Positions 13,901 through 60,548 are shown, counted from the first letter of the stretch. The stretch is 64,000 nt of DNA from Blastocladiella emersonii ATCC 22665 (GCA_025594325.1 JANHCV010000002.1:930001-994000), one strand, 5' to 3'. Made by a program: numbers and translations. The notes: generated by a model not told the origin, from the letters alone.

Positions 13901-14519
13901 TTAGTCAGAGGTCACCTGTGCTGGTGCTGCGGTATGCAGCTCAATGTTGAATGAGCCTGGACAGGGCAGCAAGTGAGTTGTCGAGGAAGCTCCGTCAACC
14001 GCACATCTACGTACCAGCAACCGTGTACTGGTCGGCGTAGCCGGCCAGGAGCTCGAGCGTGAAGGAAGCGGGGATCGAGCCGCGCGGGTTGTACTGCACC
14101 TTGAGCTTGACGGTCCAGTGGTTGCATAACGTCGCCGAGTCCCAGCAGCGGATGAAGCTGGCCTCGAGCGCGCCGTGTTGGCTGTCCTTGCAGCGGCGGA
14201 GCAGGCAGAGCTGGAGGAAGGTCGGGAACTCGTGGTCGAAGGGCAGCGCGAGGACGAGGTCGACTTGGTGCGTGAAGGTCGGCGTCACCTTGGCACGAGC
14301 GCGTAGCGCCGTTCGCATGAACGACAGCTTGCGCTTCGCCGCCAGCTCGACGCCCGAGAAGGCCACGCCGTCGCCGTCGCCGTCGCCGGCACTGAACGGC
14401 GCACGCGAACCCCACAGACGCCACGAGCGGTCCTTGAGGGCGACGGCGTGCGGTGGGAGCTCACCGAACTCGAGCGTCACGCCGTCAACGTGGTCGATCT
14501 TGTGGAAGCGAGGCTGCAT
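13901..14519 (-). CDS. Unknown beta-rich protein (family B, short form 1); intron 14014-13957
   Basis: ATG 14519. A GTACGT...CCAG phase-1 intron yields ...TVAG-SFNIELHT.... It aligns by eye with the four other family B genes. Confidence 0.7.
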
Positions 14520-14950
14520 CGTGTTGGCAGTTCGGTGGCGCGCGTCAAAGACTGCGACGAAGACGAGAAGAGGTGCGGGCGACCGAGTCGAAAGATGACA
14601 CGGCGAGGAGAACACTGTGCGAGAGCGAGGATCGACGGCGCGGGAAACCTCTCACTTTGACAGCAGCTGCCCACTCTGCCAACCCTCGCGCCTCGTTTGC
14701 ACGCACTTTGCCCGAAAGGGCGACGAGCGGAAATTGCGGCCACGCGGGCCACCCGCACACTCGTGGCGGCGCTCGCCGTGGCACGCGTGATCGCATCACT
14801 GATCTGCTGATTCCTCGCGATTCAACTCAACTAGAACGAGCGACACAAGAAAGCTTCACAAAAAGTTTACATATTTACTGACTCCATCACGAACGGATAC
14901 CAATGTTGGCGCCTCTAGCAAGGAAAGCCGCTGCCACGCGTGACTTATAG

Positions 14951-15672
14951 TCAGTCAGCGCGGGCGTGCGAGCCTCCTGCTTGGTTCTGGGTCTCTTGGG
15001 CGGCCGCCTCTTTGGCGAGCTGCGCAATGTACCGGCGAATGGTACGAGCAGTGAGCGCCTCGAAGCGTAGCTCGGCTACAAGTCGTGTTAAGCACCAGTC
15101 AGTGGCAGTGGCGAGTGAGAGACAGCCGTGGAACAGTAAGCACACGTACTGCCAGCCCCGCCACATATGGCGACGAGGACAAACTCGGTGGCGGCCCCTT
15201 GGGCCGCTTGGAAGACACCCTCGAGGGTGAAGGACCACTGGGGGCTGGCCGGCGGCCCAAGGTTCTGCACGTCGCGGATCCGCCAGTACGACGAGAGCTT
15301 GGGCGAGCCGTTGGCGACATACACAATGCCGTCCATGTTGTAGCCCGGCGGCGCCTCGACCGTCAGCACGACCTCGTGGGCCACCTTGACCTCGGAGCCG
15401 CTGAAGAGAGCGTGCCCGTTCTTGAGCTCGCGCGCCTTGAAGGAGTGGTCGGGCCGCTTCTCGGCCAGTCGGTTGCCAGCCGGGACGCCAGAGGACGCGC
15501 CATTGAGCGTCCAGCCACGAAGAGATGAAGGATGGAGGCGCTGGAAAGGAACCCCACCAAAAATGAAGCTGGCGGGAGCCTGCTGCACGTTTGAAGAGTT
15601 GAACCAGGGCGAGGTTGCACAGAGCGCCGTAGTGGCCGGGTCCACGATCGCTGACGCGGTGCCAGAGTTCAT
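14951..15672 (-). CDS. Unknown beta-rich protein (family B, short form 2); intron 15149-15076
   Basis: ATG 15672. A GTACGT...CTGAC...GTAG phase-1 intron yields ...AICGGAG-TELRFEALTART.... Confidence 0.65.
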
Positions 15673-15955
15673 GGTCGAGTACGAGCGTAGCACTTTTCGG
15701 GTGAGGGTGTCCAACTAGTTGCGTCGAGGTGCGGAGCAGCGGGCGGGGAGAGCGAGGATCGGAGGGGCGAGCGAGGCGCTTTTGTAGGCGAAGAGTCCGC
15801 CGAGCACAACGTGGCCGCACGTGGTGGCTGAGCGCGTGAAGTTTCAAGTCGCCCTCACCTCACCAACGCCGAAGCGTACGAAGACCGACTCATGAATAGA
15901 AAGCGTCATTACTGTTCTTAGGTTTCGAGAGCCGTCTGCTTAGCAGCACGTTCTC

Positions 15956-16627
15956 TCAGGTGAAAGCTGGCGATGCCGGCTTGGTGTTGGTCTTGTTCTT
16001 GCGCGGGCGGCGCTTGCGCTCGCTGTAGAGCTTGAACTCGAGCTTGTCCGAGCCTAGACGGTGGCAGTAAGTCCATGATCAACACCTAATGCGAGCGAGA
16101 GATGCGTGCTGATGATAGTGTTGTTACATTCGCACATTCTGACCTCGATGCCGAACTTCGCGGGCGTCGTGGTGCGGCGGCAGTAGTAGCGGACCGAGAA
16201 GTCGATGTACCACGTCCACAACCCATCGAACGCAAGACAGGTCGGCTCGGCGACGAGCTCGGCTGTCCATGTACCCGGCCTCGTGTCACAGAGCGGCGTG
16301 ATGGTTGGTTGCCTTGATCCAGACGAGCCGCTCGAGCTCGCCCTGGCGCGAAGGCAGCAGTGGCGTCGGAACGAGGGTTATTTAAGTCGGCCGTGTACTC
16401 GATGGGCAGCGCCTTCTCGCCCGCGCCCTTTGCGCGCTTAGCCGCGGCCTTGACGGCGTTGCGGTCGACAAAGTCGCCGGCGAACCCGCGCGTATGGTCC
16501 GTGTCCAGCAGCGGACGCTGCTCGTCGGAATCGTCCTTGTTGTTGATGCAGCGGCATGATCAAACTCGGAGATGGCGAACCAGTTGGTCGGAGAGCGTGG
16601 ACGAGGTCGCGCGATGGCAGCATCCAT
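15956..16627 (-). pseudogene. Frameshifted family B copy (about 3 frameshifts, GC-type donor at 16109)
   Basis: Family-like segments lie in three frames: NWFAISEF..., ...ALPIEYTADL, ITLVPTPLL...ELERLVWIK, WTWYIDFSVRYYCRRTTTPAKFGIEV, and last exon SDKLEFKLYSERKRRPRK. Breaks occur near 16500, 16382 and 16288. Confidence 0.6.
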
Positions 16628-40168: not shown

Positions 40169-40414
40169 GGATGGGCTTTGGGGGATAGAGAGCGAGGATG
40201 GCCCACGAGCGGCCCGCTCTCGAAAGAGCGAGCGCCGAGCGGCGCAACGCGGTCGGGAACGCCGCACGTGACGCGGCGAGAAACTCTGCCGCGTGGTGGC
40301 GCGCGCCGCGCCGAGCCGTGCCGGCCTGCCCGCCGACCCGGAAGCTTCTCTCCTCTCTCTCTCGCTCGCGCGATCCTGCAACGCCACCTCTGCACATATA
40401 TACGGATCAACACC

Positions 40415-43292: not shown

Positions 43293-43753
43293 GGTACGTT
43301 CGCTGTCCACGGCGAAAGAGAGCGGGGACGCGCGCGATAGCCGCTCGTCGCGTCGTACCGCTTGCGCGAAGACCCATCGGGGCCACCCGGAACCGTTCCG
43401 GGCAAGCCCGGTCACCGGTCGCAGCTGCCACGCGGGTCGGGCGCGCCGCAACTCCCCGCGTGCCATCAGCTGATGCCTGAAAACACGATCGCCCCGCCCT
43501 GTGGTGCGCGCCCACCGCCGCCGCCGTCGTCGACGTGGCCGCCGCGTGCCGCCGCCGCGCGCGCGCGCGTCGACCTTACCAGCACGAGCTTGCATGGAGA
43601 GCCCCTGCAGAAGACGAACGCACTACGCATCGACGACTCGCCGCCACCGCAGCCGCCGCCTGATCTGCTGAACCACCACCGACGGATCGCACATCCACGC
43701 CCCTCGCGCTCGCTCGTTCCACACCGACGAACCCCCGCACACCAACCTCCATC

Positions 43754-52969: not shown

Positions 52970-53470
52970 GTGCGCTCGCCGAGCGAGGGAAGCCCGCCCG
53001 CCCGCGGGGGCGTCAATGTACACGTTGGCTTCTCTCCCTTGACGCTCTCAGCGGACATCCTTGAGGCATCAGCTGAGCGTGTCTCGCCGCGCGCGCGTCG
53101 TTGTCGTTGTCCGCAGCCAGGGACTCTGCCGCGGCCGCCATCAGGGATGCCCGATGTGGGCTTGCACAGTAAAGCTCGATGCCGACGTGAGGATCTGCGC
53201 TGCCATCACGCGAGAGATCATTGGTTGGAGGGCCAACATGGCCCGATTCCCATGATTTCGCGGCGGCGAGACAAGGGCGGTGCTGCGGAGCCTCGCGCGT
53301 GCGTGCGAGTGCCAAGTCGTGGCTGATGGTCGGGCCCTTCAAAAGCAGGCGCGCCCCCGCCGCCGATCCTCGCTCTCTGCTCCCAAGCGCGTCTTCGTAA
53401 CGACACCATTCTGTGGCGACCTTCGTCCATTGTATCGTTTCAACTCGCGCATCGCCCGACGGCCATCAAC

Positions 53471-55550
53471 ATGGACTACTCGGCCTTCTGCGACATGCTC
53501 GGCCTCGCCGCTCCCGGCCTGCCCGCCCCTGCTCAACCGTTCCTCGGCCTGCCCGCTCCAGCTCAACCGCTCGCCCCTCTCGCTCTCGACGACGCCCTTC
53601 GCGAGCTCGACGACCTTCTGGCCTCCCCGATGCCGCCCACGACTCCGATGCCCAACATTCGCGACGGGCTCGGCACGAACTCGCGCTCGGCGCCCACGTC
53701 CGCGCCCGTGTCCGCGCTCACGGTCTCGCACCCTTCCTCCCACCCATCTTCCCTCGGGTCGCGCGGCATTGCGCCCGCGCCCGAGGCTCTCTCCGCGTCC
53801 TCGCCCGGCTCTCAGCCCGCAGGCGCCTCGCCCACCCACTCGCTCGCTGCCGACGGCCACGACACCTCGATCTCCATGACCGCCACGCAGTCCTCGATCC
53901 CCGACTCGCGCAAGTTTGACGCTTCCACTGCCAGCTACGCGTCCGGCGTCGGCCAGGCCTCGCCCGCCCCTGCACCCGGTGATCTCGCTGTCCAGGCCTC
54001 GCTCGGCTTCGGCCCCGCCTCGCTCGTCCGCGCCGTGCCTGTTCTCGCTCTCAGTGACCCGATTGCGCCCGTGGTCGTGCCCGTACCCATCGTCCATGAC
54101 CACGTCCTGCACGCCGACGAGGTCCTGCACTCGACCTACCAGTGCATTATTTGCCAGTTCTACTTTCTCTACCTGCGCTACCTGCACGACCTGGTCTACC
54201 CGTCGTCGCCGCAGCTCGCCTACCAGCTCATGGACATGGTCATGCCGACGACGGTCAGTCAGATCCTGCTCGAGATCCGCAACTTGTCCGCTCGCGGCCT
54301 GCCGACCATGGCCGACTACCTTCTTGTCGCCGGCCTGCTGACCGTGGCCGACTACGCGCGCGTCGCTGATCTGCCCTCTCCCACGGCCGCACATCTGCGC
54401 GCTGCCGGCTTGCCTTCCCCCACGCCCGCCCAGCTGCTCGCTGCTGGCCTGCCCTCGCCCTTGATCAACGGCCTGCCCTCCACCGTACCTCTCTCGCTCA
54501 CGCCCTCGGCCAACCACTCGCTCGCCGTTGGCCTTCCCTCGCCCTCGCACTCGGCCGACCTCCCCTCGCCCTCGCACTCGGCCGACCTCCCCTCGCCCTC
54601 GCACTCGGCCGACCTCCCCTCGTACTCGTACTCGGCCAGCCTCCCCTCGCCCTCGCCCTCGCACTCAGCCGATCCCCTACACGCTGCCGGCGGGCCCTCG
54701 CCCTCGCCCACGGCCGCCACCCTGCTCGTCGCCAACCAGTCGTCGCCCTCGCCCAACGCCACCAACCTCGCCAACCTCGAGCACCAGGACGGCGACGCGG
54801 CCGAGAAGTGGGGCATGATGGGCAAGCTGCCCGCCGGTTACGACGTCGCCCTCGACAAGCAGGTCCACTACGAGTCGTCGTTTGAGTTTTGCGCGACTAC
54901 CGACAAGTACGGCGAGGACGTCGCCTACAAGCACAAGGGCCACTTCATGATCGTCCCGCCGCCGCTCGACGTCACCGACCCGGCGACCGAGCTCGTGCTG
55001 TGGGTCGCCATGGACCCCAACAAGCCGGTCGACCTGCACCCCACGCTTCACCATGGGTCGCCGGCGGATGGTTTGGCCACGTCGCGGAACTGCTACGTCA
55101 AGCTCGGCTGCAACTTCAACAGCTACGAGCGGGCGTCGCCGCGCATCGAGATTGAGGGCACGGCCATCTCTAACGGCTCCAAGACCATGGGTGCGTCACG
55201 TCCTCCCGTCCACTCAAACGCCCCCACGCGCGTACGCTGACCACCGCTTTGCCCGTCCGCTAGGTACCTTTGAAGTCCAGATGATGAGCGCCCGTGGCTC
55301 GCGCGCCAGGACTCACAACAAGGGCAAGGGCAAGGACAAGGACACGGACAAGGACAAGGACAAGAAAGTGGCCAAGCTGACCTCGCTGGACGGGCCCATG
55401 CTCACCAAGCCCGCCCCCTGTTCCATGGTCGGCAAGGCCAAGGCCCAGCCCCTGCGCAAGGCCTACTTCAAGTTCAACGTCAAGACCAAGCAGCTCATCG
55501 AGCGGCAGATCTTTGACACGCAGACTCCCACCCCCGACGCACATGCTTGA
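53471..55550 (+). CDS. Family B long form 1 (low-complexity N-terminus + beta-rich domain + basic tail); intron 55191-55263
   Basis: A GTGCGT...CTGAC...CTAG phase-1 intron yields SKTMG-TFEVQMMSARGSRAR followed by a K/D-rich stretch. Confidence 0.75.
54536..54674 (+). repeat. 27-bp coding minisatellite (PSPSHSADL): 3 perfect and 2 degenerate units
   Basis: CCCTCGCCCTCGCACTCGGCCGACCTC at 54536, 54563 and 54590. Confidence 0.95.
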
Positions 55551-55955
55551 CCACGACGTCATCAGTGCAACGATTCGCTCACGGAGGCACCCTCCAAGAG
55601 TGTTTGCGGGATGGTTGATCATCAGTTATACATGTTTGTCCCTTCGATCTCTTCGCTGCTCCCTGATCCGCGAGTGCCTCGGGCTCGAGGTTGAGGCCGC
55701 ACGCGTCGCGCCACGAGAAGATCCTCGAGCGGAGCGCTGCGGTGGCTGAAGGCCGGCCGGAGGTCGGCGCCCTCAAAAGCACCTGCCCGCCCGCCACCCA
55801 TCCGCGCTCTCCCTTTGTCAACATCAAACACAAAGCTTGCTGTGCCAACACCACGCTCACCGCCCTTGCACCTCGCCAGCGTGTACTCTGAAGAGAAGCC
55901 CACGACGTTTCTTATCGTCCGGCTGTCCCTTTCGATCGCGCATCAACTCTCCAAC

Positions 55956-57657
55956 ATGACCTGTTCCGCCTACCACACGGCCGCGCTGCTCGCTGCTGCT
56001 CCGCCGCCTCTCGGCCCGCCAGATGCCTTCGCTCCCGCCATCTCCTCGCCCACCACCGACGTGTTCCTCGGCTCGCTGGCAAGCCCGCACGACGATGACG
56101 ACGACGGCAAGCTGTTCCCGTTCCAGAAGCGTCGTATCGACCTCGACACCCCGCATCCCTCCAACCTCTCGCACCTCGAGTCGCGCGACACTGCGTCCGC
56201 GCTCGAGCCTGCCTCCTCGCCGCCTGGCAGCCGGCCTGGATCCGAGATGACTGGCACCGGCCGTCTCTCGCCCAGCACCCCGTACCTCAACCACACCCAG
56301 TCCTCGTTCGGCCGCGATGCGCCCGTCGATCAAGTCGAGGCCGTCGGCGCCTTCGCCAGTGGCGCCCGCATCCTGACCGAGTCGCTGTACGACGACCACG
56401 ACGACTCGCCCTTCTACTCGGCCGAGTACGCGCTCAACCACGCTTCGTCTGCTCGCCACTTCTCCGCTGGTGGCGACACTTCCCTCGGCAACACGCAGAC
56501 GGTCTTGGGCCAGCCCATGGTCGACGACACGCTCGCCGCGGGCCCGCACACGTTCGCCACCACGCTCGACTGTGTCGCTGCTTCGCGCGAGTCGCCGCTC
56601 GACGATGCTCGCGTCCAAGCTGCGGATCTGGAGGACGGTGTCGCTGCTGTCTCCATCGTCGGCGTGCAGCACGCCGCGCTCATGGCCGCCGTCGACCGTG
56701 TCCCCGCCGCTGCCCAGGTCCTCGCGAACCAAGCTTACTCGGCCAGCAACCCGATCCCGTTCCCGATCCCGGCCACGTACCCGCTCGGCTTCGTTCCGCG
56801 CACGCCGGACCTCTCCGGCAACGTGTACCTCTCGGCCGAGTCGCCTTGCGCGCCGCTGCTGCCCATCCTGCCGCCCGCCGCCGCACCCTTCGCCACAGTC
56901 AACGTCGAGTCGATGCCCACGCCGCCCATTACCAACATCGAGCCCTCGCTCGCGGCCGACGGCACCGGGGCCCTGCTCGCCTTCACCTACACCATCGCGC
57001 CTTCCTCGGCCCCCAAATTTGACGGTCTGCCCAACAAGTTCGGCATGGCGGGCGCGCTTCCCCACGGCAAGCGCGGCAATCTCAACACGATCCTGACCGA
57101 CACGTCGCTCAAGTTCTGCGCGACGGCGACGCCCCCGCGCGGCTCCGAGTACAAGCACGCCACGGACTTCATCATCGTCCCGCCGCAGCGGGTCTCGTCC
57201 ACGCCCGCGCAGCTCGACGTCGTGTTCTCGCCCGTCAAGGATAGCCAGGTGAAGCTGGTGCATGCGCTTTGTCGCGGCCCGCTCATCGGCTATCCTCCGC
57301 ACCTCGAGTTCGACTACATCCTGGTCCGCGCCGAGTTCAACAGCCGCAACCACGCGTCGTGCCAGGTCGCGATCGACCTCACCTACACGTGCGACGCCGT
57401 CAAGATCGACGGTACGGTCCGCAGCCGCTCTCGCTCTGCCCTCGACTTCGTACTGACTTGACCTTGCTCCCTTACTTCTAGCCACGTTCAACGTCAAGCT
57501 GCAGACCTCGCGCCGCGGCCGCGCGACCACCGCGGCCACGACCCGCTCGACGGCCGGAAAGCGCGCGGCCAAGCCCAAGCTGCCGACGACGGCGGAGCTC
57601 AACGCGATGGCAGCGACCATGGCCATGGAGCAGTTTACTCCGACTCACTCCCCCTGA
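55956..57657 (+). CDS. Family B long form 2; intron 57412-57481 (3' end uncertain)
   Basis: A GTACGG...CTGAC...CTAG phase-1 intron yields KID-ATFNVKLQTSRRGR. It is paralogous to 53471-55550 (SLKFCAT vs SFEFCAT; YKHATDFIIVPP vs YKHKGHFMIVPP). Confidence 0.75.
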
Positions 57658-60215: not shown

Positions 60216-60548
60216 GATCATTCGTGAGGGAGGGAGGGGAAGAGAGCGAGGACCGAGGCGAGCGAGCGAAGCGGCCAAAGAGTCGAACGCGTCGCGGCGC
60301 CGGTCCGGCTGCCACGCCTGTCATCCGTTGCGGCCGCCACTCAGCCGCCACTCTCGGGCCTCCGCCACCTTGTCGGCGCCGCGCGCTTCCTCTCCCCCTC
60401 CCCTTCCCTGTGAATGCATCAATTGGACGCGATCCTCATCGCGCACACGTATCAAACCACTTGCAACACACCGGCCGATCCTTAGAGGCCGCCCGCCTAC
60501 CCGCTGCTGCTGCCCTCACGAATCGAGCCCTACCCGACCCGACCCGTC

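Follow-up and report, generated by a model that had tools for sequence, protein, structure and literature searches.

The window analysed here is a 64-kb stretch of contig JANHCV010000002.1 in the assembly GCA_025594325.1 of Blastocladiella emersonii ATCC 22665. At 13.9-16.6 kb of the window lie three genes, termed A, B and C, which form a separate tandem group of coding-like sequence about 40 kb from two further genes, D and E. Gene models were spliced from the raw sequence, with A and B on the minus strand and D and E on the plus strand, and the following features were obtained.

13901..14519, minus strand: gene A, exons 14519..14015 and 13956..13901, 186 aa, intact.
14014..13957, minus strand: intron of gene A, 58 nt, GT-AG, phase 1.
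14951..15672, minus strand: gene B, exons 15672..15150 and 15075..14951, 215 aa, intact.
15149..15076, minus strand: intron of gene B, 74 nt, GT-AG, phase 1.
15956..16559, minus strand: gene C, a pseudogene.
53471..55190, plus strand: exon 1 of gene D, 573 codons plus 1 nt, encoding a Pro/Ser/Ala-rich, repeat-containing N-terminal region and, from about 54770, the predicted beta domain common to D and E.
55191..55263, plus strand: intron of gene D, 73 nt, GT..AG, phase 1, within the last predicted beta strand.
55264..55550, plus strand: exon 2 of gene D, encoding the last strand (TFEVQMM), then a basic tail rich in Lys, Asp and Gly, and an extension at the C-terminus.
55956..57411, plus strand: exon 1 of gene E (H9P43_002263), encoding a disordered N-terminal region and then the beta domain shared with D, which begins at about 57010.
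57412..57481, plus strand: intron of gene E, 70 nt, phase 1, at an aligned codon identical to that of gene D.
57482..57657, plus strand: exon 2 of gene E, encoding the last strand (TFNVKLQT) and a tail rich in Arg and Lys that contains the NLS-like KRAAKPK.

The spliced models of D and E agree letter for letter with annotated proteins, the 668-aa product of D with P0002 and the 543-aa product of E with P0001, which is described as [quoted passage not shown]. A single GT-AG intron interrupts each of the genes A, B, D and E; these introns measure 58-74 nt, are in phase 1 and have a CTNAC-type branch site. GC content at the third codon position in the proposed frames was found to be 0.89 for A, 0.81 for B (0.90-0.94 across 15500-15275) and 0.87-0.93 for D/E, where D has 0.88 as a whole and 0.93 within its domain; for comparison, the adjacent CCT7 gene shows 0.96, and intergenic and flanking DNA about 0.5-0.7 in all frames. 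Because this third-position signal is frame-specific and coding-like, A and B are probably real predicted genes. A word-index search of the protein database with exon 1 of A and exon 1 of B, covering proteins of 0.55-1.75 times the query length, gave no match, their own genes included. Neither gene appears to be represented among the public proteins of the assembly, which do include D and E of that contig; the published annotation was made ab initio with funannotate and holds 10,031 genes (PMC9730499).

Gene C is a pseudogene. Its coding remnants occupy three frames (16559-16383, 16381-16289 and 16287-16141) and resume at 16051-15959 past an intron-like stretch of about 90 nt, with third-position GC of 0.77-0.90 in the fragments. 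A stop codon interrupts the frame, an in-frame ATG is absent, and exon 1 cannot be joined in frame to exon 2 via a GT donor. Since the assembly was built from PacBio HiFi reads and polished with Illumina reads using Pilon (PMC9730499), and since the neighbouring genes are intact, the multiple indels within 600 nt are unlikely to be assembly errors.

Upstream of the ATG by 30-160 nt, and in the orientation of the gene, a pyrimidine-rich motif C[CG][AG]TCCTCGCTCTC was observed, with copies located as follows.

14621..14634, minus strand: the 14-mer CGATCCTCGCTCTC, about 100 nt ahead of the ATG of gene A.
15748-15761, minus strand: exact copy of the 14-mer CGATCCTCGCTCTC, ahead of gene B.
53364-53377, plus strand: exact copy of the 14-mer CGATCCTCGCTCTC, ahead of gene D.
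55798-55811, plus strand: degenerate copy of CGATCCTCGCTCTC, ahead of gene E.
16591-16601, minus strand: degenerate copy of CGATCCTCGCTCTC, ahead of gene C.
60242-60255 and 40188-40201, minus strand: copies upstream of unrelated genes, namely AtuA and another near 40.15 kb.
43318-43328, minus strand: a further copy.

With up to 1 mismatch allowed, the 11-mer of the motif occurs 16 times against 2.7 expected. The 14-mer was considered as a mark of a gene family and ruled out, because it also stands upstream of unrelated genes; for the same reason it is probably a core-promoter or start-site element used generally in B. emersonii. A CAAAAG box was also noticed about 20-25 nt farther upstream than the motif in A, B, D and E.

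Judged from their sequences, D and E are tandem paralogues. BLASTP between the two aligned about 141-148 residues with 31-32% identity (E = 7e-10 and 3e-12), the Smith-Waterman score stands at z = 20 against shuffles, and the alignment contains 48 invariant columns. The conserved part is a C-terminal domain of about 150 aa, situated between a long region rich in Pro, Ser and Ala and a tail rich in Lys and Arg. The N-terminal regions consist of 12-14% Pro, 10-15% Ser and 15-16% Ala, with Lys nearly absent, and are net acidic, while the tails past the domain are rich in Lys and Arg and NLS-like in composition; neither protein has a signal peptide. Tandem repeats were found in the N-terminal region of D at 53508-54666. 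One of these, at 54532-54661 on the plus strand, is a 27-nt repeat in 4.8 copies with 90% matches, encoding LPSPSHSAD units of the disordered region, and additional repeats of 30-39 nt are located at 53508-53572 and 54295-54460. Just past the last beta strand of D, at 55318-55364 on the plus strand, the hexanucleotide ACAAGG is reiterated 7.8 times and encodes the (K/D/G)-rich tail.

Relatives of the D/E domain were sought by running the D/E profile through HMMER exhaustively against a set of 1.84 billion representative proteins, and five matches were returned, namely D, E and three others. P0003 was rejected as a relative: its 1556 aa are the translation of a tandemly repeated DNA sequence with units of about 60 aa, and its E = 3e-33 is the sum of 24 weak stretches. 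This protein shows that repeat-driven false positives are possible in the representative set. The remaining two, giants composed of He_PIG (PF05345) Ig repeats, were rejected as well, their scores being summed over many weak repeats; one-to-one BLASTP of these giants with D/E gave E = 0.026 per repeat, and hhalign of D/E against the repeat-unit alignment gave 0.2% probability. A word-index protein search with E returned only E itself, and two scans of metagenomes, queried with the D/E alignment and A, gave no match. Zero families were found by hmmscan of Pfam-A at E up to 10 with D, E and exon translations that included exon 1 of A and exon 1 of B, and a profile search of PDB sequences, also at E up to 10, gave zero matches. 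Because the exhaustive profile search yielded only D, E and repeat artefacts, the domain appears on present data to be confined to Blastocladiella emersonii, and D and E are an orphan pair for which no relative from any other species is on record.

Whether A, B and C belong with D and E is a separate question. All peptide blocks (1 to 3) quoted in the first-pass annotation were found in the sequence at their places. Its claim that the five genes align over about 150 aa holds for D and E; for A, B and C, however, none of the tests (BLASTP, hhalign, an HMM against decoys, phmmer and leave-one-out profiles) lifted the comparison clearly above background. BLASTP of A, B and C against D/E and one another gave E values of at least 0.3, and when the D/E alignment was compared with A or B by hhalign, the probability was below 1%. 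Under the D/E HMM, neither A nor B rose above 860 decoy segments taken from all six frames of the window, phmmer queries with A, B and C brought no fellow member above the decoys, and leave-one-out profiles placed A 27th, B 319th and C 8th among about 850 decoys. Furthermore, the addition of A, B and C to the profile resulted in poorer detection of D and E. The best marginal pairs, uncorrected for the 10 pairs compared, are A-B with z = 3.4, in a register other than that drawn by eye earlier, and A-E with z = 3.1; A-D gave z = -0.2, despite D being the paralogue of E. Profile scores among the five, which the first-pass annotation had named as evidence against the family should they fall to background, are at background for A, B and C. 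No additional copy was found by tblastn across the 64-kb window. A five-member family is doubtful, and the lesson is that block alignments of beta-rich proteins made by eye may persuade and yet score at background.

Gene structure provides a different line of evidence. A phase-1 intron just before block 3 had been claimed for all five genes. Phase 1 was confirmed for A, B, D and E, and in A, D and E the introns fall at the identical aligned codon, the split codon being followed by [ST]-F-[NE]-[VI]; but the intron of B is shifted by about 8 codons with respect to the blocks, and that of C is shifted too and requires a frameshift or a donor other than GT. In the best local alignment of A with E, which covers 49 residues of blocks 2-3 with one gap, both phase-1 introns stand on one column. 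As the genome averages about 1.9 introns per gene (PMC9730499), an exact match of site and phase between A and E is unlikely by chance. Blocks 1 and 2 are spaced 53 residues apart in A and 55-56 in E and D, and A has no basic tail. Of about 850 decoys, none outranked block 2 of C against a profile of A, D and E, though its E value was 2.6. Based on the identical intron site in A, the co-linear blocks and the similar block spacing, a case can be made for offshoots of the D/E domain: A is somewhat more probably than otherwise a distant relative of D/E, and for C the chances that it represents a very diverged offshoot are evenly divided. For B, whose membership has gene structure and position as its sole basis, inclusion is doubtful and would be the less expected outcome.

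The fold of the D/E domain was modelled with AlphaFold2 on the two-sequence alignment, once with E first and once with D first. The best model, with E first, is an all-beta Ig-like sandwich of low confidence (mean pLDDT 55.7, pTM 0.53); the other four models reached a pLDDT of 47.5 or lower, and the D-first model (pLDDT 41.8) has the same strand order. Long strands span residues 49-57, 68-75, 82-90, 101-111, 117-128 and 131-143 of the E-first model, and the predicted strands coincide with block 1, both halves of block 2 and block 3, with the intron inside the last strand. A beta sandwich is thus far weakly supported by the models, and a six- to eight-stranded Ig-like sandwich would be the likely fold of the domain. 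A structure search with the low-confidence E-first model matched generic Ig-like folds, and none of p53, Rel, Runt, CSL, NDT80 and T-box was among the top structural matches listed.

A p53/CSL-like Ig-fold DNA-binding domain had been proposed for the five genes before these analyses. Part of the proposal is borne out, since D and E are predicted to be all-beta, the blocks lie on strands and the ESM-Atlas search gave leads at 0.75-0.85; kinship by sequence is not supported, no match being present in Pfam or PDB sequences. The comparison of folds with p53-like classes was likewise divided, as the best D/E model (pLDDT 55.7) is an Ig-like sandwich but no p53-like factor is among its top matches listed. 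In the ESM-Atlas feature search, D pointed to LAG1-DNAbind, COE1_DBD, SPT23_MGA2_DBD, P53 and DG1062_N clusters at 0.75-0.85, and E to SPT23_MGA2_DBD, COE1_DBD and DG1062_N at 0.76-0.79, with 6 of the 10 best named matches of E in the clan of the top match. These values are to be read against the tool's line of 0.9 for more than a lead and against the one third of shuffled proteins that reach 0.8. That one structural class keeps recurring is noteworthy, but the lists of D and E are not independent, because the two proteins are homologous. As for DG1062, a neighbour family in the Atlas, only an instrument model number was found in the literature.

The preferred explanation, to which an even chance is given, is that D and E are orphan nuclear regulators with an Ig-like domain, that A and C are possible diverged offshoots, and that B is doubtful. 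From their composition, D and E would be lineage-specific nuclear regulators in which the Ig-like sandwich together with the basic tail serves as the binding module and the disordered N-terminus as the effector part. That the module binds DNA is a tentative proposal, and the proposal that it binds a protein or chromatin partner instead is about equally tentative. A rather unlikely alternative holds that A, B and C have no kinship with D/E, being independent fast-evolving or recently arisen small genes, one of them dead, whose likeness to D/E stems from generic beta alternation and chance intron placement. This would fit the statistical tests, all at background, the failure of the marginal A-B and A-E pairs after correction for 10 comparisons and the negative A-D score in spite of the paralogy of D with E, as well as the low language-model "recognition" of A (1096) and the absence of A and B from the protein database. 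It is opposed, however, by the observations that the intron of A agrees exactly in site and phase with those of D/E and is followed by the same [ST]-F-[NE]-[VI], that the blocks 1 and 2 are spaced alike (53 in A versus 55-56 in E and D), that the A+D+E profile puts block 2 of C first among decoys, and that A, B and C stand in tandem in one orientation, each with a single intron near its 3' end.

The opposite alternative, that all five genes constitute one family with a new p53/CSL/Spt23-type Ig-fold DNA-binding domain, in which the short A, B and C compete with D and E, is improbable. It draws on the LAG1-DNAbind, COE1_DBD, SPT23_MGA2_DBD and P53 clusters named by the Atlas features of D and E, on the all-beta prediction, on the transcription-factor-like architecture of D/E with basic tails, and on the phase-1 intron between block 2 and block 3 in the gene set. 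The Atlas values of 0.75-0.85, however, lie under the 0.9 line in a range where a third of shuffled proteins reach 0.8, the Pfam and PDB sequence searches are blank at E = 10, p53-like factors are absent from the top structural matches listed, and A, B and C are at background against D/E; C is moreover a pseudogene, and A is without a basic tail. The idea that short copies act as competitors or dominant negatives is unsupported, one of these copies being a pseudogene and the other two apparently unannotated. A narrower version, that D and E, perhaps joined by A and the dead C, represent a Blastocladiella-restricted new branch of the p53/CSL/COE/Spt23-type superfamily, beyond sequence recognition and carried by lineage-specific transcription factors, would likewise be a long shot.

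If the orphan-regulator explanation is the right one and the module does bind DNA, an early-diverging fungus would possess a private beta-sandwich transcription-factor family, providing a data point on the diversification of the p53-like superfamily and on the origin of lineage-specific regulators. At present, the yield is more limited: a well-defined pair of orphan paralogues that probably carry an Ig-like domain, one pseudogene, and two small genes that appear to lack annotation.

Among known systems, He_PIG (PF05345) accounts for two of the three non-self matches of the D/E profile, which is an artefact and not kinship. Generic Ig-like/E-set sandwiches were matched by the structural model, including the GH123 N-terminal domain, PapD/ASH/MSP, pilin, cadherin-like and GAE ear folds, with scores at the tool's level for unrelated common arrangements and sequence identities to D/E of 3-15%. 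These proteins are mostly extracellular or bacterial, whereas D and E are without a signal peptide and have the make-up of intracellular regulators. The p53-like superfamily (LAG1-DNAbind/CSL, COE1_DBD, SPT23_MGA2_DBD and P53) differs from D/E in that it gave no sequence or profile match and is not represented among the top structural matches listed, and the confidently placed core of D/E is smaller, with only about 95 residues and six long strands. Nevertheless, the same superfamily tops the named language-model feature neighbours of both D and E, and it resembles them in the combination of a beta sandwich, as predicted for D/E, with long disordered regions and a basic tail.
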